Part shown: positions 2,070-64,000 of the stretch, one piece after another
Position numbering within the stretch: position 1 is the first letter of the stretch
Layout: each line of letters begins with the position of its first letter
Assembly: GCA_013115145.1 (NCBI GenBank)
Contig: JAAPAO010000052.1
Span: 1 to 64,000, forward strand
DNA from: Perkinsus chesapeaki ATCC PRA-425
Lineage: Eukaryota; Protista; Perkinsozoa
Reading direction: 5' to 3'
Length of the DNA stretch: 64,000 nt
The notes under the pieces: model-generated
Databases searched by the model: none
What the model saw: only the letters and a program-made list of their open reading frames with translations
What the model was told of the DNA's origin: nothing
Translations under genes and position numbers: made by a program

Positions 2070-2661
2070 CACAGCCCTCCTTCAATTGTATTGCACAACA
2101 TTTAATGTTGAACAATATTGTAAGACAAACGACAACGATGTCATCAATAAATGATGATCAATTAGAATTCCAGACGAACCGGAGGCTCTGATGTGGCATT
2201 ACGTCTTCACAATTCGGGGGATGACACTACTCGCGAAGTTCCGGAGCAGTACTCGGCGCCCCGCTGACACCGATTTCGTCTAATAGACGTCGTCTATCGC
2301 TGTGGTCCACGGCAGTATCCCGCACAACTATTATTTTGATGTCCAGGATGACCGATCGTGTAATGCGGTGTCCCAGTGGGGACAGTGCAGCTATTACAAA
2401 GCTCATTGATCTGTAGCGTAATTGTATTCGTCCCTACAGTTAGATTTATCCATTAATCTCCCTCTTGAGTTAACGAGATTTGCTACACCAACGGGCGACA
2501 ACATATTTCAGTTTCACTATGGTGGTCCACCATTGGTGGATATGGAACATAAGGAGGTACTGTATTCAGGTCAACCGTCATGGTTGTCTTCCTTGGTCAA
2601 GCTCTCTGTGAGTGACTCTCGGCAGTTGGCCTTCTTAGGGAGTGATGGTGGGTCAAATTGA
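2070..2661 (+). pseudogene. Fragment of the same family, copy B
   Basis: Shares ggaggctctgatgtggc...tctatcgctgtggt...caaccgtcatgg...ggtcaagctctctgtga with copy A. It has indels and stops, and a possible decayed F-box-like start (PPSIVLHNI*). Confidence 0.5.
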
Positions 2662-2899
2662 CCCGGTCAATGTATCATATATATAACGTGTTATTGCCAC
2701 TCAATTTCATGATAGACTATCACTGATGGTACTACACACGATCGCAGCACCACCTTCAGTTGCCCATCTGATGGGCCCATCATAATAACAGTATCTCGAG
2801 TATCAGTGATGATTAATAATTAATCTGATTAAACTGATCAATAATTTAATCAAATTACATCTCGGTCGAATTTGAGACCTGAAATGAACATGACTTTCA

Positions 2900-3668
2900 C
2901 ATGAACTTCAAAGTAAAAGTCTCAGTTGCTCTCAATGAATAAGGTGCAGTGCACCCGGTGCACCAATGAGCTCATCGGATGCAGATACTTCAATCCAGGT
3001 ATCCTTCGGTCAGGACTTGCGGAACTCCCATGAAGACAGTAACACTGTGATTCTGACGAGTCGAGCGCTCTGTGGCAAACCCTGAAACTACAGACACGGT
3101 CAGAGAGGCATGGTGACGACTCGTAGTAGGGGTCGTTACGACTCCTACTACGAGTACTTACTCCTACTTACGCACAACACGCCTTTTGTGAGCTGCAGAA
3201 AGCTTCGGCTTGGCCCCCCTTCTGTCCCGTGTATCTTTCGGGCCTTCTTTGATGATCTTACTTATCACACTTTGGCTGATTTGGAATGCGGCTGCCAAGT
3301 CTTTCTGGGTAAACTTCTTGCGCCCATCTGGGCGGGTCTTGGCGGACATGCGTTTGATCTTTTCGCGGTCCTCGGAGGAGACGTGAGTAGAGCGCCCCGT
3401 GGTGGAGAAACAATTGAGTAACTTGGAAATTTCGTTTCGTGATGCGTGTTTTTCAAAAGTATTCTATTTCAGTGAGGCAGTTCTGCGCGCGCTGATAATT
3501 TCGCGCGCCGGTATCTTTGCCCCGAGGCATGAAACGGTTGATCGATTCAGACGTGCCAACTCACTATGTGTTCTAGTACTATGATACAAAGTTTTAGACT
3601 CTTACGTTTATTAATCAACGAGAAATCGTAATAATACGGAATATTCTATTTCATTGGGGAGGGCTGTA
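2900..3668 (-). mobile_element. Truncated Tc1/mariner-type DNA transposon with intron-containing transposase N-terminus
   Basis: Paired-like HTH (KKFTQKDLAAAFQISQSVISKII...RGAKPKLSAAHKRRVVR). A GT-AG intron at 3171-3082 splices in frame (VVR|FATER). TA|CAGCCCTCCCCAATGAAATAGAATA at 3668 looks like a Tc1 TIR with TA target site. No DDE domain or clear second TIR. Confidence 0.7.
3119..3155. repeat. 18-bp-arm palindrome with 1-nt centre and one G-T pair
   Basis: actcgtagtaggggtcgt-t-acgactcctactacgagt, read directly from the sequence. Confidence 0.9.
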
Positions 3669-3688
3669 CTTACGACTCAGTCGTAAGT
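3668..3688. repeat. Perfect 10-bp-arm palindrome abutting the putative Tc1 TIR
   Basis: acttacgact-c-agtcgtaagt. Confidence 0.9.
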
Positions 3689-4149
3689 GCGAAAGCAACT
3701 TCATCCTCTCTCCGATCGCATTTACCTTTAGTTCCGAGTCGCAGGGTGAAGTACGTGTTCGGTACTGCGCGTGGAGCAGGATAGCTCTACAAGTGTGCTT
3801 GTATATGTAACGCCCGATATCACTCTTGCGTATCGGCTCCTTCTGAATTCCGATAATTCTTGTGTTCTAGTTGTGCGCGTGTTACTTCGAATTCCGAGTT
3901 TTGAGTTCAAACTTTGAACGCGAAGCATTCTGAAGAGCATAACGAGCCCTCTAGCTTGTATGGCCTCCAGACTAGAACAGAATAACTCAATACAATTGAA
4001 CTCATCATTAGGCCGTGGCTAACGCGAGTGATTCATCCTGTCTGCTCTGAGCAACCTGATGACAATGTAAACTACTTTATGTAATCGAATTCTCTTTAGT
4101 TGATTTCGTCTCACTTTGTTGGCTGCATAAACAGACTCCAATAGGGGCG

Positions 4150-5900
4150 GATCAGACACCTTGCCATCTTCTATATATCTGCAGTACCCTTATAATATGT
4201 GTATCAACGACACCGAGCTACTTCACGCAAGCTGCGACTATCTCATTCCTTGCCACTTCGTTATCCCACAGTAAGCCTATCGCCGTCTGAAGTTCCAGTA
4301 CTCCCCGTTGGATCATCCCTTGTTCGCAGAGAGCGCATCCATACAGCCAGTGGGCAGAACCTGCTATCGACGCAGTTAGTAAAATGCTCTGAGCATTGGG
4401 TACACGGTGAGTCACCGTGTGCCTAACCATCACCGCTAGCTTCGATCTCCAGAGCTCTCGAAGCTGCCGCTTCCGCTAGAGTTGGAATTTTGTTGGATAG
4501 CCAGGCAAATCCCAGTTCGGCCAGCAGTTTAACCTGAGGTGATGGAGCTTGCTACCATCAGTTTGATGGCATCAGAGGGTAACCACCCTACATTCACCGG
4601 TTCATTAATCATATACAGATCAAAACATCGACGGGGCTGTCTCAGACCTTCCTCGAAGGGCCCTCCACGGAGGAGAACCTAATGTAGTAGTAGAGATTGC
4701 ATGAACGAAAAAGATTGTGGTAACTTTACCAGAGACATCAAGCCCCAGCAATCAGCGTGCAACATGGGATGACTGCCGTCCAATTGGCCACTATCACTAG
4801 GGATTCTAGAAGTGTCAGCTAAAGACAATGCCATAGATATAGCCTTCTTCGCCTGAAACGGTGATATTCACTGGTGCAAATATCTTGCCTGAGTCAGCCT
4901 GACCTCCACCCATCTCTCTTGATGAACATAAGTAGTAGATATGTAAAGCCATGCCGTAGCTGTTGGCTGGGATGCCAAAACCTACACGAATTATCGAACG
5001 AAGCTCAGTAACTTCCATACATCCTTTTGACTAACCATCAGAAAGTCTCGAGCTTGGGACCATTTCTTCTTCGCTAGCAGCAATCTAGCGTATTGCAGTA
5101 TTGCCAATAGGCGAAGCTGTCTAGATTCTATCAGATGTGTCCCGTTACTAGGCGTCGAGGGTTATCTACCTGTGGTACTCTCCCTCTGCAAGCCAGGAGG
5201 GGTTGCCTTCAGTAATGCCTCACTGACTTTGCTGTCACCTGCCCCACTACGTGCTAAGCACTCGCCCAACAGGGCCCACGATGAGCAACCTGCAAATATA
5301 ATTGAGGCACCGGGAGAGTTCGTCCTTTTGTGGTGAACTGTTTACGATGAGGTTCCGTAGCAACTATTCGTTCAAGTACTTCAACAGCTCTATCCCACTG
5401 CCTATGCTGTGTAAGACTAACAGCTACCAAATGATGGAACTCACACCACTGCCTACAGATCTGGCTCAGAAATGATGTTGCCCCTGAGAGAACGAGAGTC
5501 CAGTGTCACAGAGCAACCGGGGATCAGCGGAGATCGAGATCAACGGATACATACCTATTTGCTTTCTGATGTCTCTCAATGCCAAGCCAATAAGATCAGC
5601 AAATTGATGAAAACTGTTGTCTACAACAAGCTCCTTGAGCAACGCTAGAGTAGTATGGTCAGACTGTGTCAAATGAAGCTTAGGTGTTGGGACTAAGCTA
5701 TCAATATAAGGGGGCTGCAGAGACTTCTGTGTTACTTGGTGGTAAAAGGTTCATGTATAGCCCAGCCCCAGGGCCACATGCATCTTCATTCCCACTAGTC
5801 CCGATTGATCTAGGGGAATCTTCAGAGAGTGCTTGACTATCATTTTTATTGTCTTCATCTTCATGATGGCCAGCGTCAGCACCATCGAATAGCCTGGATG
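4150..5900 (-). mobile_element. Decayed non-LTR/Penelope-like reverse transcriptase relic
   Basis: One frame with stops gives ASFDTV*PYYSSV (cf. SFDVxSLYTS) and then HWTLVLSGATSFLSQICRQWC (cf. LvL..nyF.f....YrQ..G). YxDD could not be recovered. Confidence 0.4.
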
Positions 5901-22946: not shown

Positions 22947-24596
22947 ATGGGTCCTGAGATGGTTTTCTTTTTCCTAGTGTTGCAGACGTCAGTGGTCGAG
23001 ACTTCACGTATCCGCTTCATTGTTAATGTAACAACGTATCTTGATCTCGGTATTAAAGACCACAGGAAGGATGCAACGCCTTGTTGGTTGTCATCGGCCA
23101 GGAATACAGAAGGCCTCACTTTACCTGGAATGGACTATAAGACGATATCAATGATTCAGGAAGTGACTGTGGAAGACGGTGCTCGTTATACTGTCACTGC
23201 AATGCCAAACTATCCATATCAATACTTTATGACTACAGAGACTTCAAATCATACCCGCCTGGAGCAGCTCTTCGGAAATGAGGCAGTTTTGGTCTCCACC
23301 GGCGGCCCTGAAGCCGACGTGGTTAATATGAAAGCCGATTGGTCCAAGGAGGCCCTGCTCGGCGATGGCTGGGTGTATGACACCAATGTAACATTTGACA
23401 ACCGCAACCTCAAGCGTTGGACCAAAACTGTTGAGGAGTTCGACAACGAGTCAAGCTTTAATCATTCTGCTTTGTGTCATTCTGGTGTTGGTCCAAATCG
23501 TTGGTATCTCCTAACCGATGAGAATGACCATCCAGTTAGGTCTGATGCAATCAACACTTGTAAAGAGCAGCTCCACCAAACGGCGGAGTTTAGCAAGTTT
23601 GAGGTCGGTGTGTCACTTGCTAGCTCTGCCTTCACCACTAAAGAAGATATCTTCTATCGCTATGATATCTCCCCGGCAAGAAAATTACGAGACTCAGCAG
23701 AGAGGTTAGCACCGCCTGTCGGTCGACTGTATTTAAACAAAGCAGTGCCACACCCAACCTCTGAGACGCATCTTGGTTATGTTAAAGGCTGGGAAGGGTC
23801 TGATTGGTTATCCAATAAGCAACTGCGTGGGGAGAAGAAAGACAGAATCAACTATTTCACAGTTGAAGAGGGCACGGCATCATACAGTTACTTCTATGCC
23901 GACCACCAGAGGCAGCTGGTTGAACTGGTCAAATTTATGTTTCCAACTACTTGCCGAGATAAGCGGACGGGTTATTCCTTTTGCTTGTACATAGAGGTGA
24001 CTGATGTTATGAGAGGGATGCGTGACTTATCAGTCAACGCTGGCTTCAGCATTGTCGATGTCACAAAACCGAATATAGAGGTTACGCTGAGGCTCTTCTT
24101 CCAGGGAACTTTTGATTCGGAGAACCACTTGTTCGACGTCATTCTTGGTCTACAGGCTCAAGGATGTGCTATTGTGTGGCAGCTCGGTGAAGGTATCGCA
24201 CTCTATGCTGCTGTTTGTATAGATGGTCGAGCCAGAGTGGAACATCCCGAATCACCGAACCGTGTGATCGACGTCCGCATAGCTATGTCATTGACTTTTG
24301 GAGTTTCCATGCCAGTAATCGGGGACTTGGCCGACATCACGTTGCAAGGTGCTCTCACCGCCACCATAGACAAGAACATATCTGCAACTGCTTCCATCAT
24401 GTTAATCAAGTCTTTGCTGGTGGCGGGTGTCGGACTGGGAATAAGTGTGACTGGAATGACTAGTAACCTTGACATGAAGACCTGGGACTGGAGTATCGGA
24501 TTCGACCTACTGTGTTGGGTGAATGTTCTTTTCTGGAAGCATACTTGGAGTAAGACCTATAAAATATTTGACACTGGTCCGATCCACATGCGATGA
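22947..24596 (+). CDS. Intronless 549-aa lineage-specific protein with hydrophobic N-terminus, copy 1
   Basis: 1650-bp ORF; near-identical paralog at 26483; signal-peptide-like MVFFFLVLQTSVV. Confidence 0.85.
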   Translation: MGPEMVFFFLVLQTSVVETSRIRFIVNVTTYLDLGIKDHRKDATPCWLSSARNTEGLTLPGMDYKTISMIQEVTVEDGARYTVTAMPNYPYQYFMTTETSNHTRLEQLFGNEAVLVSTGGPEADVVNMKADWSKEALLGDGWVYDTNVTFDNRNLKRWTKTVEEFDNESSFNHSALCHSGVGPNRWYLLTDENDHPVRSDAINTCKEQLHQTAEFSKFEVGVSLASSAFTTKEDIFYRYDISPARKLRDSAERLAPPVGRLYLNKAVPHPTSETHLGYVKGWEGSDWLSNKQLRGEKKDRINYFTVEEGTASYSYFYADHQRQLVELVKFMFPTTCRDKRTGYSFCLYIEVTDVMRGMRDLSVNAGFSIVDVTKPNIEVTLRLFFQGTFDSENHLFDVILGLQAQGCAIVWQLGEGIALYAAVCIDGRARVEHPESPNRVIDVRIAMSLTFGVSMPVIGDLADITLQGALTATIDKNISATASIMLIKSLLVAGVGLGISVTGMTSNLDMKTWDWSIGFDLLCWVNVLFWKHTWSKTYKIFDTGPIHMR

Positions 24597-26482: not shown

Positions 26483-28132
26483 ATGGGTTCTGAAATGATT
26501 TTCTTTTTCCTAGTGTTGCAGACGTCAGTGGTCGAGAGTTCACGTATTCGCTTCATTGTTAATGTAACAACGTATCTTGATCTCGGTATTAAAGACCACA
26601 GGAAGGATGCAACGCCTTGTTGGTTGTCATCGGCCAGGAATACAGAAGGCCTCACTTTACCTGGAATGGACTATAAGACGATATCAATGATTCAGGAAGT
26701 GACTGTGGAAGACGGTGCTCGTTATACTGTCACTGCAATGCCAAACTATCCATATCAATACTTTATGACTACAGAGACTTCAAATCATACCCGCCTGGAG
26801 CAGCTCTTCGGAAACGAGGCAATTTTAGTCTCCACCGGCGGCCCTGAAGCCGACGTGGTTAATATGAAAGCCGATTGGTCCAAGGAGGCCCTGCTCGGTG
26901 ATGGCTGGGTGTATGAGACCAATGTAACATTTGACAACCGCAACCTCAAGCGTTGGACCAAAACTGTTGAGGAGTTCGACAACGAGTCAGGCTTTAATCA
27001 TTCTGCTTTATGTCATTCTGGTGTTGGTCCAAATCGTTGGTATCTCCTAACCGATGAGAATGACCATCCAGTTAGGTCTGATGCAATCAACACTTGTAAA
27101 GAGCAGCTCCACCAAACGGCGGAGTTTAGCAAGTTTGAGGTCGGCGTGTCACTTGCTAGCTCTGCCTTCACCACTAAAGAAGATATCTTCTATCGCTATG
27201 ATATCTCCCCGGCAAGAAAATTACGAGACTCAGCAGAGAGGTTAGCACCGCCTGTCGGTCGACTGTATTTAAACAAAGCAGTGCCACACCCAACCTCTGA
27301 GACGCATCTTGGTTATGTTAAAGGCTGGGAAGGGTCTGATTGGTTATCCAATAGGCAACTGCGTGGGGAGAAGAAAGACAGGATCAACTATTTCACAGTT
27401 GAAGAGGGCACGGCATCCTACAGTTACTTCTATGCCGACCACCAGAGGCAACTGGTTGAACTGGTCAAATTTATGTTTCCAACTACTTGCCGAGATAAGC
27501 CGACGGGTTATTCCTTTTGCTTGTACATAGAGGTGACTGATGTTATACGAGGAATGCGTGACTTATCAGTGAACGCTGGCTTCAGCATTGTCGATGTCGC
27601 AAAACCGAATATAGAGGTTACGCTGAGGCTCTTCTTCCAGGGAGCTTTCGACTCGGAGAACCACTTGTTCGACCTCGTTCTTGGTCTACAGGCTCAAGGA
27701 TGTGCTATTGTGTGGCAGCTCGGTGAAGGTATCGCACTCTATGCTGCTGTTTGTATAGATGGTCGGGCCAGAGTGGAACATCCCGAATCACCGAACCGTG
27801 TGATCGACGTCCGCATAGCTATGTCATTGACTGTTGGAGTTTCCATGCCAGTAATCGGGGACTTGGCCGACATCACGTTGCAAGGTGCTCTCACCGCCAC
27901 CATAGACAAGAACATATCTGCAACTGCTTCCGTCATGTTAATCAAGTCTTTGCTGGTGGCGGGTGTCGGACTGGGAATAAGTGTGACTGGAATGACTAGT
28001 AACCTTGACATGAAGACCTGGGACTGGAGTATGGGATTCGACCTACTGTGTTGGGTGAATGTTCTTTTCTGGAAGCATACTTGGAGTAAGACCTATAAAA
28101 TATTCGACACTGGTCCGATCCACATGCGATGA
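26483..28132 (+). CDS. Intronless 549-aa lineage-specific protein, copy 2
   Basis: Same length as copy 1. I count 16 aa differences (about 97% identity). Confidence 0.85.
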   Translation: MGSEMIFFFLVLQTSVVESSRIRFIVNVTTYLDLGIKDHRKDATPCWLSSARNTEGLTLPGMDYKTISMIQEVTVEDGARYTVTAMPNYPYQYFMTTETSNHTRLEQLFGNEAILVSTGGPEADVVNMKADWSKEALLGDGWVYETNVTFDNRNLKRWTKTVEEFDNESGFNHSALCHSGVGPNRWYLLTDENDHPVRSDAINTCKEQLHQTAEFSKFEVGVSLASSAFTTKEDIFYRYDISPARKLRDSAERLAPPVGRLYLNKAVPHPTSETHLGYVKGWEGSDWLSNRQLRGEKKDRINYFTVEEGTASYSYFYADHQRQLVELVKFMFPTTCRDKPTGYSFCLYIEVTDVIRGMRDLSVNAGFSIVDVAKPNIEVTLRLFFQGAFDSENHLFDLVLGLQAQGCAIVWQLGEGIALYAAVCIDGRARVEHPESPNRVIDVRIAMSLTVGVSMPVIGDLADITLQGALTATIDKNISATASVMLIKSLLVAGVGLGISVTGMTSNLDMKTWDWSMGFDLLCWVNVLFWKHTWSKTYKIFDTGPIHMR

Positions 28133-55543: not shown

Positions 55544-57717
55544 TTACAATTGTAAGGTCGGACCATCATTACCATAGCCACCAGTCTCCTCCTCCTCATA
55601 ATCATCAACATCTGTTATTATAGGTGGTTCCTGTTCATTTAATGTCTCACGTCCCTCCTTCTGCTTCCTCTTTTCATGGAACTCCTCTCGAAGTCTTTGC
55701 TTCTCATCCTTCTCATTCGATCTCTTTCCCTCTTCCCTCGTCTGGGACTTAGCCTTTGGCTGTTTAGGTGGTCGGATGGCTGTATAAGGAGGAGGAGTAT
55801 AACGATGGTAGCGGAGTAGTAGCTTACATATAGATGGTAGTTGAAGCATTTCACGCATATTAGGGGAGTTACCAGCATCACACTCACTTAAGAATGATAC
55901 TGAAATATAACATGTTACGAGTTGTTGAGGGGTCCCGCATGGGGGGGGCACTCCTTCAAGCTCTTGCTCACCTGCATCATAGTCCCTTTCTAGCTCCTTA
56001 CCCTTACTTGTTAAAGGTAATACTTCAACCATACCTAGTATAATACTATGCCTTATAATAGAGCAGAATACATACCTTTAGTTAAGCCATCTAAGTCAAC
56101 CTTCCTATCGGGTGTGTTAAGGCACATAAAGGACAGGTTCTTCTTCTTCTTATTAGACTGTTGCTGATTATCATCCCCTTCTCTTTTAGCGGCCACCACT
56201 GCTGGGTCTAGTTTCAACTGTAAGGTGGAGGATGTTAACTATGACCTAGTTGCTGCTGCTGCTGTTTAATACCCTATATTTAGCAGTATCAAGTGCCACA
56301 ACACGCATCCCTCTATGAGATTTCATAGCTTCTCTAACAACCTTTTTAACAGCATCGGGGAACTTGGATCGATACCTTTGAAGAATAAGAAGAAATAACT
56401 GTATGACTGTAAGAGGTGGTAGTGTCATCACCCTATAAGCAAGCATTTCTGTCGACTAAGGCACATACTGTCTAATTGCTTAGCGTTCTTAGCAAACCTA
56501 AAATACACCAAGATAGTAGCAAAGGTAGTCTCCATTTCACTACGCCTACCTTACAATAGGTCTTGTATTGGCTTTAGTGAACTCAACTACAGTCTGAGAG
56601 TTAGCCATAGAGTTGGCGTTCAACTGGATAGGACGATCACCATTAGCAACTACGAATGCTGGCATGAGGTTGTTAGAGAACTTATATCTATAAGGTAAAT
56701 GAGTGTAATGGTAGTAGTAGTACGGCGTAATGTAGTACTTCTGATAGATGCTTTTGCCTGTATCAGGTAAAGGCTGATGACAGTCCATAGTATAGGTTGA
56801 TGCTATACCACGAAGGTCTCTATCAGCTTCTTTTAATACCTATATCAATAATACTATCGGGATAATCGTATTATGCCGGTGGCGACTGCCAATATCTTAC
56901 AGGAGGTATCTTATTGACCTTGAGGCTTTTATCAAAACAGTAGACGAGAGCAGGCTCTCCAGATAGCAACACCTTAGTAATGTGATGCGTTGTTGAGAGT
57001 GATGTGATTAACTGCTGCCTACCTGTCTTAAGGCTGTACTATCCTGGATATCGATATGCTTGAAACCAGCAGCGAAAAAGTCGTAAATTGTGAATACCTA
57101 TTAGGTAGAATAAGTAACAGGTGGAGCAGGATGTAGTGGACTTACAGTAGATAGGGCGCCAGCACTGAACAGTGATAAAAATAGTAAGCCTATGGATGCT
57201 TTCTTCCATGTAAACTAAAAAACATTAAGTCGATATGAGTTATCCTCCTCCTCCTTCTCAGTAAGGTTAATACCCCTTCAGAATCTCTGGATCGTTTAGT
57301 AGATGCAGCCTTCTGTGCAGCAGCTAATGCCCTCTCTTGCTTCCTGATAATAAACCATACCAACGAAAATACCGTTAACAATCATACTCATCAACATTGG
57401 CATAATACACCTTCCCTCCTCCTCCTCCATTAGCTTGCTGCTGCTTACGATGGCGTGGTTGATTATGATGATGTTTGGTATCCTCGTTAGTAGCACCTTC
57501 GGCTTTGAAGGACTCGAAGAGCGCTTTCTAAAAAACGCGCGAGTCAATATTATGAATTAAGAATAGTAGTAAGAATCTTCACCACCTTATCACTTCCAAC
57601 TGCATATCTATCTACGTCATCATCCCCAAAAAGCTTAGCCATATCCTCCTTCTTAGGGGCATCACCACCGACACCATCACCGGCACCATCTGCTTTATTA
57701 CGAGATCGAGGGGCCAT
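55544..57717 (-). CDS. Multi-exon hypothetical protein with a probable TM segment, possible thioredoxin-like folds and a charged C-terminus
   Basis: MAPRSRNK start, GT-AG-flanked exons, ends ...GPTLQL*. No diagnostic motif recognised. Confidence 0.55.
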
Positions 57718-57984: not shown

Positions 57985-60900
57985 TTATACTAATAATGCA
58001 TCATGGACAAATGTACGGTATGATACTATATCGCTAAGTAAACCATCCACCTCAGCCTCAACACCAGCAGCAGCATCATCATCATCATCATCGGTTGTAT
58101 GGTAGCCCTGCTGCTCTATGGTAGAATGAGGCACTGCCGGCGAGGGCATCATCATCATCCAGCTAAGGCATTATAATATAACTGTTATTAAAGTATATCT
58201 TACCTTAAATTAAGATGCAAATAGCGTTGATGGAATCTATTAATATAATCAGATAAGGTAAGGTATTGGGATATACGCTCCTGATAATAAAATATATAGG
58301 AAAGAGTAAACAACAAAGTAGTAGCAATAATAATAATAGTACAGCATCGAAGGTTAGTATTAATGTAGCTGGATTCTTAAGTAGCAATGATACTGTATCT
58401 TGTAATGCTCTAAAATCACCTAATAATGGAGGTTTATGATAATAACGAGTGCCTAATAGAGTAACACCTTCACCCCCATCATGGTCCATATCATCAACCT
58501 TCCTTCTAACATATGATAGTATATCCAATACAGTTCCTCTAGGATCTCCTCTATTAAGACTCAGAGGTACCTACATCATCATTATTATTATTATGAGTAT
58601 AATAAGTGTTATTGTTGTTGTATCATCCCCATACCTGGCATATATGGCAGAATACTCTAGCATCACCATGATACTGGCTTGGGGTTCTAGACAAGTCATC
58701 TAAAGTGGGGCTCTTGTTATGGGGGTCATTACGGGTAATGGTACTATTATACCGTGGATGATGATGCTCTAACTGAATAAGATAATGAGTAAAATATATT
58801 ACACATGATGATGATGATGACATACGTGGAAAGGTGTATCATACATACGAACGGTGCTGGGTGGCCTCTCAGTAGCGCAAGATGTCGGCGGTGATGGTGC
58901 TCTGTTAGTAGTCGTAGGGATAGGCAATCTCCTTATCGAGTCAAGTATAGACTGAGGATCCCTAAAGTATAAGGCTGCTGCTGTTGCTGTTGCTTCTTAT
59001 GTAGCACTAAGAGTAACTCTTACCTTAATAATGGATGACATGCTGTAGTCGCTAATGGTTCTCTATAGCATGGTCGACGTCTGACCATACGAGAGAGGTA
59101 GTCCTAATAAGAAACAGAGGATAGGAGGGAGAGTGTACTAGGCAGCAGCAGCAGGCTACTAAGAATAGTGGATCAAGATGACGACCAAATAGCTGCTTGC
59201 AAGTAGTGGTGGTCTGGTGAGCATCGGCTGTTGCTGTTGCTGGATCAGGTAGCCTGTCCTCCCATTGTTTGGGGCGTACACCAGTAATAGCAAATAATAT
59301 AACAGCACCAAGTCCCCATACATCAACCTATTAGTAGGTAATAATTATATTATGATAATAAGGTATATGGTTATTATTACTAAAGACCAGTCTATATCAC
59401 TCAATAGGGATTCAATACTATGTACATCATAATCATCCTCATCACTTAACATCTGGAGTATATGCGCCACCTGAAAGGGTATAATGGTAAATGGCAGTAG
59501 GAGCAGAGTATAGGGTATTACTACCTCTGGTGGATACCACCCTTCTTTAGCATGCCCCTCTGACAGTATCTCCTTAGCTTTCTTCTTGACTATCATCCTC
59601 ATTGTGGTATCATCATATTGCCTTCCACCTCCTTGGCCTGCTGCTGTTGTAGTATGACCCTCAGTCAGCTCGCTGCTGCTTGTCGAGCATGGTCTTATTT
59701 TATTAATTATATCCAACAGCTTAACTTTACCAATCTGACACATATTAACAGGCATACCAAAGCAGCAGCAGCAGCAGCAGCAGCTCGTAGACGTACATGA
59801 TCGCCAATTCTAAAAATGACTCTAGATCCCGATGGTCGTGATCCTGATGGTAGATCGACTAATACATTATTAGCTGATAATCGGCCATGATATATATTAA
59901 AGAACTGATAACAATAATACAAGTAAGGATGTTGTTATTGACGTATAACATGAGGCGTACATGCATACGCTGTAGGCCTGCGGTCAAGTCTCTAGCTAAT
60001 ATCTGTACCATATCACCAGATAGTGCAGTACTAGATGGATCTGATAATATTAATAATAATAATATGATGAAGGGTAATGTAAGTAGTAGTACCAGTAGTA
60101 TCTATAGATGCACCAAAGCCTGCTAACATCTCATTCAATGACATATCACATTCTGTTATAGTAACCACAATCTTACCAGTCGACTAAGAGAGCAGGCGTA
60201 ATGCTATATTTGTAGTGCTAGTATTGGTGGATAATGATTAATACCTCCTCATATATATGAGATATATTAACAATATTAGTATGTGGTGATCGGGCCAATA
60301 ATGCTAATTCACGGACTATCTGTCGTATACCCCCTACTCTTGACAAACATCTATTATGGTATATCTGAAGAAGAAGAAACCTTTAAGGATGATGATGATG
60401 ACGATGCTAGTTACTGGCTCCTCGAAGGGTCCACTTGTTGAAGGTGATGATGTTGATGATGCTTTATTATTAGATAATAGTATCTATCACTATTACTTAT
60501 ATCATTATTGTTATATATTACTACTACTACCTGATCTGGGAATACTCTTTGTAGGTTATGTAGGAATGCAGTAACATCTCTCTGTTGCTCCTCCCCTTCA
60601 TCCTTTATCGGTATTATCTTAGCCAGGCATTGCTTACCCTGAGTATAACATAGTCGTACGCATAGTCAGTACATTATCATACGTCATCATCATCAATCGA
60701 CTTGTTGCCATTTGTAGACAGCCTTCCTCCTCCTCTTTTTGTTCTTGTATCCTTCTCTTTAGCTCTATGCACACCCTTCGCTCCATGGGCTATATTAGAG
60801 TATACCATCACTCTACCATCGCCCTAATACCCCATCATATTCTTTACCCAGTAGTAGTATTACCATAATATCCCATACTCCTTCTCCTTGTTGTTCCTCT

Positions 60901-63900
60901 GTCTCGCTAAGCTCCCTACTAGATACCCCACTGGCCTCATTTGTAGTACTGGCTATAGACGGTGACACCAATGCCATACCCCTCCTATCTCTAGCCGTTG
61001 CTCCTGCTACTGCCCCCGACTGCTGCTGCTGCTGCTGTCTGACCTAGAATATAATGATCTAACAAACGAGCATTGAGAATGATGGAGAGAGACCCCTATA
61101 ATAGTAGTTGAATACATCCTGTTACTGTTTCCCATTATTAACTGTTTCAGTATACACTGTAGCTGCTATGTCATCGACTATACTATTAATACTGTCATCT
61201 CCACTACTACCACCATCCTCATCATCATCATTAACAGCAAATGATGGTTCTCCTGCTACTAGCCCTCCTGATAGCTCTTGTTGATGCTGTTGTTGAGCTT
61301 GCCTATGTTGTGCACCACTACGGAGGAATGGTGCTAGACATTGACGTAGCTCATCTTGACCTAAGATAGTGTATATAATAATAGTAAGGTATATTAGTAA
61401 TACTACTTAATGGTGATGCTCTTACTTCCTCTGGGCAATGGGCAAATGGACAGTAGTATCTACTTATATACTATGTACTGTATTATTATAATAATATTAT
61501 ACCTAGTACAGCATACATCCTCACATAGGAGAGCTTTATATACCCATGGATGGAATAATACCTCCTCTTCAGAATGTGATAATCGGCAACTACGCCCAAG
61601 TGGACTGAAGGACTATAGGTATAAGGTATTGTTATATACAATAGTTTCTCACCATCTACATCTCATCCTTCTAGGCGGATGATGATGTGTAGTGTTATTA
61701 TTATCAGTTGGATCAGTATCCATCATTATATAACACAATGCTTGGGAATAATGGTCACAGAGTCTCGGCTCATAACTATCAACAACAACAATACTATAAC
61801 ACGTGCTATTATTATATAGTATATCATTATTACCGATACTTTAATGGAGACCTCCTCCTCCATTCTATATTATGACTATATTGGCATCTACCTATACCAT
61901 ACTTACTGCTATATTATATTTATTATTATTACTAGAGAATAGGCATTCCCCAGTAGCAGCAAACCTCTCACAGGTACTGGTACGGAACTTAGCAATATCA
62001 TCATTTGATAGTATCGCTGGTAAAGCCATTATTATTATAACTCTCGGTGGCGTGTTACATTATAATAATACTACTAATAACACAACACTCATACCTTTAT
62101 CATGTATACAACAACCCCAACCTCTATATCATAATCATGGTAAGATGGTGATAATAACATCAACTGCTGCTACTACCCCGAACACCACCACCACCTTGTT
62201 GTTGACCACGTAGTTGTTCTATAGCCTTCTCAGCTTTCTCCCGATATGCCTATACTACTACAGTATATTATTGTATTAGAATGTTGTTGTTACCTTTTCC
62301 TCCTTTAATGCTGTCTCTAGTGGTACTATAGCACGCTTGATCTCATCTTGTACTAACCTCTCTACATCAGCTGATGTCATGGATAAACATGATGATGGTG
62401 AACCCAATACTGATGATGACTTTGCTCTATGACTTGATGATGATGATGATAAAGTAGCAGTATAAGATGTACCCCTACTAGATGCAGTACTACTATGACA
62501 AGAATAACAACCTAATAAAAGTCATGTTAAATACAACCATGCATACCTTACTTGAGCAGATGTCTCGAGACCCAGTAAGATACGAACAAGATGATGCTAG
62601 ACTACTTGCTGATGATGGATAATTATAAGATGATGATGATGACGCTGTACTGGTATGATCGGTTACTGTATTCCCTATATATAACAACAATACTACTACA
62701 GTAATCAAATATACCAAGTATTACCTCTACGTGGAGTAGTTGTTATTGTTTTTATTGGCCTTGGTGGTGGTAATGATGATATACGTCTATTAGACGGTAT
62801 ATTCCTCTTCCTTATACCATTAGACAGCACAGCCTATTATTATATTACCATACCTTATACCTTTATTATTACCTTATCCCCTCCTTGCTGTTGTTTTCTT
62901 TTCATTGACTCTATTGCTGCAGCCACTCTTGAGGCTGCTATGGATGATCTTTTAGATGCTATCTTTTCCCATTGTATACGTTGCTGCCAGAATTGATGAT
63001 CTTCATTAGGACGTCTCATATCTATTATTACTAATAACTATTCCCACTACTACTACTATCACCACCACTCCCATCTAACCCAAGTATTAGGTATAACATG
63101 ATGAAACAGCAACAATAACAACCGTAGTACTGGATAATGCAGTAATGAAGCAGTTAATGGAGGCGATATAACACTAATAGTATTATCATCGATGTGAGCG
63201 TTGTTGCTGTTGTTGCCTTGTTGTTCTCGGTGATCCTTCCCTCGCTCCCCCTCCTTGCGGCTGCTTTCTTCTCCTACTATCTTTTCTATTACGTCTAGGT
63301 GATAATGTTGTATTATCAATATATGGCGTACCATAATAATATTCACTATCTGAGCAGTATGTAGTATCATCATCATCATGCTCTATATACCTAAGTAGCT
63401 ACAGTAATAACAACCCTACTACTTCCTATCCCCCCCTACTCTTGTGGCACTATCCATGTAACATTAGTATCCCGTTCAATAGATGGACTCCTCCTATCTG
63501 ATGATGATGATGCCCCAGACCTATTACTCTATATCACCCGCAACCAACATTATTATATATTACTACCCATAACGATAATGTCGTTGTTGTTGTTGTTGCT
63601 GTTTAGCAGGACTAGTACTATATAGATTACCATAGGTATTATCACTGTCTGGTGGTGGGGGTGGAGGGGGTGGTGGTTGCTGCTGCTGTTGGCCTGGTGT
63701 ATATATCTAATAATCCTATCTTATACCCCGTTATATTATATATTACTACTACCCCTGTACCATATCCTCCTCCTAATAGCTGTGGTTGTTGACCTATACC
63801 CATCCCTCGACCCTAACCCACCATAACAATAGTAATGATCATCCGACCTACTACTACTACCTCCCCTGGTGGTTGATGCTGTCTTCTAGGCTCAAGTAAC

Positions 63901-64000
63901 TTAGCAAAATCAGCACGTATTGATGAGTTTGCTATTCGTCTGAGATATGTCATTATTATGCCTAGTAATAGTAGTAGTATTACATCTTAGCTATATCATC
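57985..64000 (-). CDS. 5'-truncated gene: CCCH zinc-finger array, IRE1/RNase L-like pseudokinase and KEN-like domain
   Basis: Spliced in phase: KFRTSTCERFAATGECLFSSRCQYSH (C-x8-C-x5-C-x3-H), CPLGRSCRLSHSEEEVLFHPWVYKALLC...CPFAH, then AHGAKG, LAKII, VRELALL, YHGRLSANNVLV, IGDH, EGWYPPE, VDVWGLG, HPLL and TVLDILSYVRRK. The reading frame continues to the window edge. Confidence 0.75.

Follow-up and report, generated by a model that had tools for sequence, protein, structure and literature searches.

A lineage-restricted Perkinsus chesapeaki locus encoding CCCH zinc fingers and a divergent kinase-like domain, with no detectable KEN nuclease

The closest described systems to the locus considered here are the kinase-KEN proteins, including IRE1 and RNase L, in which an N-terminal module sensing nucleic acids or ligands is followed by a kinase-like domain. 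In both IRE1 and RNase L the KEN nuclease, which is all-helical and has a motif spacing of Rx4H, comes directly after the kinase and is packed onto it. In IRE1 proper the kinase is preceded by a signal peptide, a lumenal sensor and a single membrane span, whereas RNase L has a pseudokinase and no membrane span. In HEPN nucleases generally, the motif comprises an arginine, a polar residue and then a histidine, with the spacing Rx4-6H (PMC3710099), and the HEPN survey of Anantharaman et al. (2013) already lists kinase-KEN proteins carrying CCCH fingers (PMC3710099, Table 1). This work concerns a gene on the minus strand, at positions 57985-62029, of a 64,000-nucleotide stretch of DNA from Perkinsus chesapeaki ATCC PRA-425 (assembly GCA_013115145.1, contig JAAPAO010000052.1, positions 1 to 64,000), the whole of which is here called the window. 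A first-pass annotation of this DNA had proposed a fusion of CCCH fingers, pseudokinase and KEN-like nuclease, in an architecture that it did not recognise; given the proteins in the survey, such an architecture would not be new. Its remark that apicomplexans lack IRE1 agrees with the literature (PMC3084755, Table 1), but the source of the sequence is a perkinsid, not an apicomplexan. The reading put forward instead, which stands at about even odds, is of a cytosolic protein composed of CCCH fingers, a Gln-rich and acidic linker, a divergent pseudokinase, a disordered spacer, a small unassigned alpha/beta domain and an acidic tail, which would not itself cut RNA.

The minus-strand sequence from 62029 to 57985 is a real multi-exon gene, running from an ATG at 62029 to a TAA at 57985-57987. 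Splicing by hand from the sequence joined 23 exons into a single open frame, with GT-AG boundaries at all 22 introns, two of which are confirmed by RNA. Donors read GTA in 19 of the 22 introns, and acceptors YAG in every one, with intron lengths of 41-166 nucleotides (nt), and usually 41-66 nt. The exons have a higher G+C content than the introns (0.43 versus 0.32), with A+T richest at third codon positions. Codon log-odds derived from long open reading frames in the rest of the window average +0.15 in frame, versus -0.30 and -0.62 in the two alternatives. The assigned frame scores best in nearly every exon, those at the C-terminus included, although the splice solution inside the second finger, which uses an 18-nt exon 4, is uncertain. 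The more likely product has 899 residues, or 882 with a short exon 21. This exon probably runs on to 58343, where a GTACTA donor replaces an atypical 113-nt intron with a typical one of 62 nt; the 17 codons thereby added score +0.20 in frame, and the intron left over has a G+C content of 23%. With this extension, the region proposed as KEN would differ in sequence from that first considered. The predicted protein has neither a signal peptide nor a membrane span, as its N-terminus is the CCCH array, and the alphaF helix of the kinase core is its sole hydrophobic span, where hydropathy over 19 residues reaches its peak. In this it resembles RNase L, and differs from IRE1 proper.

The zinc fingers are encoded by exons 1-6 (61407..62029, minus strand; residues 1-123). 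The first, C-x8-C-x5-C-x3-H, is split by intron 1, and when rebuilt from exons 1 and 2 it matches the PF00642 (zf-CCCH) profile across positions 1-26 of 27 with 28.7 bits, exceeding the cutoff of 20.5 (E-value 1.2e-6); the match to the joined exons is thus also evidence for intron 1. After this finger come an RRR motif and then two further Cys/His clusters, both non-canonical, in which 16 residues separate the histidine of finger 2 from the first cysteine of finger 3. This spacing resembles the layout of plant tandem zinc finger (TZF) proteins and of Unkempt, although the piece from exons 5 and 6 scored below recognition against the Pfam CCCH family (E-value 1.2). Hence the Unkempt-type array of the first-pass annotation is borne out for finger 1, but not by profile recognition for fingers 2 and 3. 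The likeness to tandem CCCH RNA-binding proteins, such as the plant arginine-rich TZF (RR-TZF) proteins, animal Unkempt and TTP, consists of the PF00642 match of finger 1, the arginine-rich motif after it and the 16-residue spacing, whereas fingers 2 and 3 of the Perkinsus protein are non-canonical, and those families have no kinase-like domain.

The transcript evidence also falls within this region. None of the public RNA runs holds the stretch, but two small RNA-labelled runs with the same species label yielded a single informative contig, which is 193 nt long and about 91% identical to the window. It is spliced exactly at the introns 61460-61502 and 61361-61406, joining exons 5, 6 and 7, and the four differences listed between it and the window are all synonymous. 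Therefore at least the part of the gene encoding the fingers, or else a closely related allele or paralogue, is transcribed, has the modelled splicing, and evolves under purifying selection. The remaining matches in these two runs were low-complexity noise, with nothing across the other junctions. The divergence of around 9% between this contig and the window (61311-61592) suggests that the fingers are also expressed from another copy, be it an allele, a paralogue or one from a different strain.

Beyond the fingers, exons 7-8 (60848..61360; residues 124-260) encode a low-complexity linker of Gln, Ser, Ala and acidic residues, with a net charge of -13 and no match to a Pfam family. Exons 9-18 (59024..60789; about residues 255-648) then appear to encode a very divergent protein-kinase-like domain, for which the signals are weak but consistent. 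The translation contains kinase motifs in their canonical order, albeit with loop insertions: AHGAKG, K303, E351, HGRLSANN, GDH, WYPPE, DVWGLG and RRRP. The strings quoted by the first-pass annotation (the Gly loop AHGAKG, CLAKII, VRELALL...PHTNIV, ECDMSL, EGWYPPE, GTVLDILSYVRRKV and DYINRFHQRYLHL) were likewise all present after minus-strand splicing. Searches were made with pieces of the domain, rather than with a single full-length query, and found sub-threshold matches of exon 11 to Pkinase (E-values 0.06-0.1), and of the joined exons 12-14 to the Kdo kinase family (E-value 0.045). When a 93-residue core was compared with PDB sequences, all 40 matches were protein kinases (E-values 0.1-2), with human IRE1 (0.1) and ULK1 (0.11) tied at the top as weak matches. 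The language-model neighbours of exon 17 were almost all kinase fragments, while a metagenome scan with the same exon found nothing. Across the gene, single exons used as queries drew hardly any matches from Pfam, the PDB or the atlas, and a tblastn comparison with the neighbouring bona fide kinase gene added no information. Matches of the activation-loop insert (59525-59734) to TAL effectors were discarded as a low-complexity or repeat artefact, consisting of summed weak phmmer matches.

Hence the IRE1-family kinase fold that had been claimed is upheld only in part: the domain is kinase-like, and IRE1 comes first among the PDB matches, but that match is weak and tied with ULK1, and the catalytic motifs are degenerate. 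The affinity of the core with IRE1 is best treated as a lead, not as a result. The catalytic aspartate of HRD is replaced by arginine (HGRLSANN) and DFG reads GDH (IGDH), with the ATP-site lysine of VAIK and the glutamate of alphaC retained. By these substitutions, the domain is read as a pseudokinase that is probably inactive, but may still bind nucleotide.

Whether the fingers and the kinase-like domain form one protein is decided by the putative intron 7 (61044..61142), where the first-pass annotation correctly suspected an ambiguous linker junction near 61050-61150, as at least three in-frame donor/acceptor pairs are found there. The balance tips slightly towards one fused gene. Exon 8 includes 66 nt (22 codons) before an ATG at 60977 that score +0.22 in frame, versus -0.45 and -0.41 in the others; that this coding-like sequence opens right at a YAG acceptor argues weakly for the fusion. 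The best-surviving alternative, which is appreciably less probable, is that two genes lie side by side: one encoding a CCCH protein of approximately 201 residues, from exons 1-7 to the TAA at 61125, and the other a separate pseudokinase starting from the ATG at 60977. Intron 7 has the only GTT donor in the model, and its 99 nt exceed the usual length; reading through from exon 7 meets a stop (61125-61127) after six codons, with the in-frame ATG 148 nt further on; and such a gap would be in keeping with the contig, in which same-strand intergenic distances are 91-290 nt, the present gene being separated from its upstream neighbour by 134 nt and from its downstream one by 268 nt. Against two genes, the frame stays open and coding-like for the 22 codons between the acceptor and the ATG, several in-frame joins are available, and CCCH-kinase fusions are on record (PMC3710099, Table 1).

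The remainder of the protein begins with a Pro/Thr/Ser/His-rich spacer, encoded by exons 19-20 (58635..58961; residues 649-739), which has the composition of a probably disordered segment and matched no Pfam family. It places about 90 low-complexity residues between the kinase-like domain and the region that had been called KEN-like (58204..58570), made up of exon 21 (preferably 58343-58570, alternatively 58394-58570) and exon 22 (58204-58280). Exon 23 (57985..58162) supplies an acidic C-terminal tail and the stop codon, as judged by its translation and codon scores. AlphaFold models of 59- and 76-residue pieces of the region, made from a single sequence and with low confidence (predicted local distance difference test score of 65), contain two helices, with a beta hairpin between them, and a final strand, suggesting a small domain of mixed alpha/beta structure.

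One doubtful identity for this domain, although the leading alternative for the tail, is a ubiquitin-like beta-grasp following the kinase-like domain, as in the kinase and ubiquitin-like domain pairs of IKK and TBK1, in which case its role would be in protein-protein docking. The language-model neighbours of the 76-residue piece all have ubiquitin-like folds (TDP-43_N, GT-1 ubiquitin-like, Rad60-SLD, ubiquitin, CIDE-N and the Par3 N-terminus), and the modelled topology is a hairpin, helix and strand, after an extra helix. A local alignment to ubiquitin, which pairs LTLSDY with RTLSDY and LHLNL with LHLVL, scored 36, a value reached by 29 of 5000 shuffles. Yet the atlas scores of 0.75-0.80 behind those neighbours are at chance level, Pfam and PDB sequence searches returned nothing, the Foldseek template modelling score to ubiquitin is just 0.26, and the alignment falls short of significance when the whole protein is used; it also relied on a ubiquitin sequence entered by hand, and on a segment picked post hoc, after the lead had been seen. 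The likeness to IKK/TBK1-type kinases is thus one of order, a kinase-like domain and then a small domain with weak ubiquitin-like signals, whereas the Perkinsus protein has no scaffold or dimerisation domain, no catalytic aspartate, and no significant match in sequence or fold.

The original proposal, of a kinase-KEN protein related to IRE1 and RNase L that is guided by CCCH fingers and ends in a possibly degenerate KEN/HEPN nuclease, is now improbable. In its favour, IRE1 is the best, if weak and tied, PDB match of the kinase core; IRE1-like strings are visible by eye, namely the HG in the Gly loop, ECDMSL, EGWYPPE and VPL...GTVLDIL...RRK; an R-x6-H motif (RKVDDMDH, residues 762-769) lies on a predicted helix; and proteins combining CCCH fingers, kinase and KEN exist elsewhere (PMC3710099). 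The resemblances to KEN do not survive direct tests of the tail. Firstly, neither PF06479 (Ribonuc_2-5A) nor any other Pfam family matched at an E-value of 10 or below, whether the query was exon 21, exon 22, the extended exon 21, a 72-residue join, or the 86-residue join of the first-pass annotation. Secondly, phmmer found no match to pieces of the region among PDB sequences. Thirdly, a search of 1.84 billion representative proteins with exon 21, containing GTVLDILSYVRRKV, recovered no IRE1, RNase L or true homologue, and an atlas search using a language model did not recognise this exon. The three matches among the 1.84 billion proteins were bacterial repeat proteins, and were set aside as spurious. 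Fourthly, the 76-residue model, with its order of helix-strand-strand-helix-strand, gave no significant Foldseek match, and none to IRE1, RNase L or the KEN fold.

The context and the motif also differ from those of IRE1 and RNase L. A disordered spacer of 90 residues follows the kinase-like domain, in place of an immediately adjoining KEN; the tail is predicted to include strands; and the R-N-x3-H spacing of KEN is absent. The Rx6H of RKVDDMDH is not at the KEN spacing, and the loose HEPN pattern Rx4-6H has 10 chance occurrences in the whole protein. Hence a KEN nuclease at the tail is not supported. Two of the three outcomes that the first-pass annotation had itself named as telling against it were found, as far as these could be tested: the lack of a KEN match, and an architecture that was already recorded. 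In a variant of the proposal, the CCCH fingers of a protein confined to the Perkinsus lineage would bring RNA to a kinase-KEN module of IRE1/RNase L descent in which both halves have degenerated, the kinase being dead and the nuclease either altered past recognition or exchanged for a ubiquitin-like domain. The protein would then be a non-catalytic RNA sensor or scaffold descended from an ancient stress nuclease; this too is an improbable account.

The favoured reading remains that of a pseudokinase-containing protein without a nuclease. In the proposed mechanism, tandem CCCH fingers of the RNA-binding TZF/Unkempt kind would bind RNA; the Gln-rich and acidic linker would, in the most economical splice model, tie them to the divergent kinase-like domain; and the dead kinase and the tail would act as a scaffold regulated by nucleotide or by partners, with the protein itself performing no RNA cleavage. 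Several considerations weigh against this interpretation. Every kinase match is sub-threshold, with E-values of about 0.05-0.1 at best, and the inactivity of the domain is deduced from its motifs alone. The searches covered single exons and five domain-size joins of 51-93 residues; such piecewise tests have low sensitivity to a very degenerate KEN, and the HMMER filters hide very weak matches. No transcript crosses exons 7-9, so the fusion is unproven, and intergenic gaps in the contig can be as short as about 90-270 nt, so the two-gene reading fits. Finally, the searches yielded no orthologue by which the conservation of the gene could be judged.

The neighbouring genes define the limits of the locus. 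The first-pass annotation had placed its fusion at 57985-64000, but 62163-64000 holds the 3' end of another gene upstream, also on the minus strand, which is multi-exon and continues past the end of the window. Its last part is coiled-coil-like (ADVERLVQDEIKRA...), and its stop lies 134 nt before the ATG at 62029. The exons of this upstream gene have conserved counterparts in a related Perkinsus: a 16.6-kilobase contig (L002) from a third Perkinsus, found using the exons of the downstream sulfate transporter (SulP) as queries, is collinear with the window. The upstream gene lies at 2538-4285 of this contig, with its exons at window positions 63941-62291 corresponding to 2538-4187, and in both species the last exon ends in a stop. 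Therefore 62163-64000 is separate, the gene under study starts at the ATG at 62029, and extension into 62030-64000 is ruled out. The same queries also found two tiny fragments from Perkinsus olseni.

Downstream, a minus-strand gene from 51757 to about 57717 is annotated as a 1503-residue sulfate-transporter-family protein, whose long last exon encodes a cyclic-nucleotide-binding domain, and whose exons are 76-82% identical to P. olseni proteins. It starts 268 nt past the stop of the gene under study, and at least four genes on the same strand are packed together here, with gaps of 130-550 nt. In another part of the window, tandem intron-less open reading frames of 549 residues occupy 22947-24596 and 26483-28132 on the plus strand. 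The two are 98% identical in DNA and 97% identical in protein, differing by 17 synonymous and 16 non-synonymous codons, and have a hydrophobic N-terminus; no called gene has been recorded for the product of the second copy.

The collinear contig also records the fate of the gene itself in a relative. The start of the transporter gene, at window position 57717, corresponds to position 5029 of L002, and the two neighbours lie 743 nt apart there, versus about 4,450 nt in the window. The only similarity between them is a relic of exon 1, at 4576-4686 (window 61915-62030), which is 65% identical over 116 nt. In this relic the ATG has become AAG, 5 nt have been deleted, there is an in-frame stop, and the CCCH spacing is broken; the remaining 4 kilobases or so of the gene are absent from the syntenic site. 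Hence the gene was present in the common ancestor and was deleted in the relative, in which it is dispensable. The weakest of the alternatives, that the P. chesapeaki gene is itself a dispensable one decaying into a pseudogene, with kinase and tail degenerating under relaxed selection, would accommodate this deletion, the lost catalytic motifs and the lack of any exon 21 homologue among the 1.84 billion proteins, but is very unlikely given an 899-codon frame intact over 23 exons, good codon scores in every region, and a diverged copy that is transcribed and spliced with only synonymous differences listed.

This is therefore a lineage-restricted expressed gene, and as the evidence stands it represents neither a new nuclease nor a new route for the unfolded protein response. 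The main practical value of the result is caution, as short KEN-like motif resemblances failed the tests of profile, sequence and fold. If the tail were nonetheless KEN, the protein would belong, as a divergent example, to an architecture already on record; otherwise, a CCCH protein either contains a pseudokinase or is encoded beside one. Should the fusion prove real, it would provide a clean case in which a pseudokinase is tied to RNA-binding fingers, in a lineage that branched early among the relatives of apicomplexans and dinoflagellates, and could inform how kinase-KEN sensors diversified outside animals and fungi.

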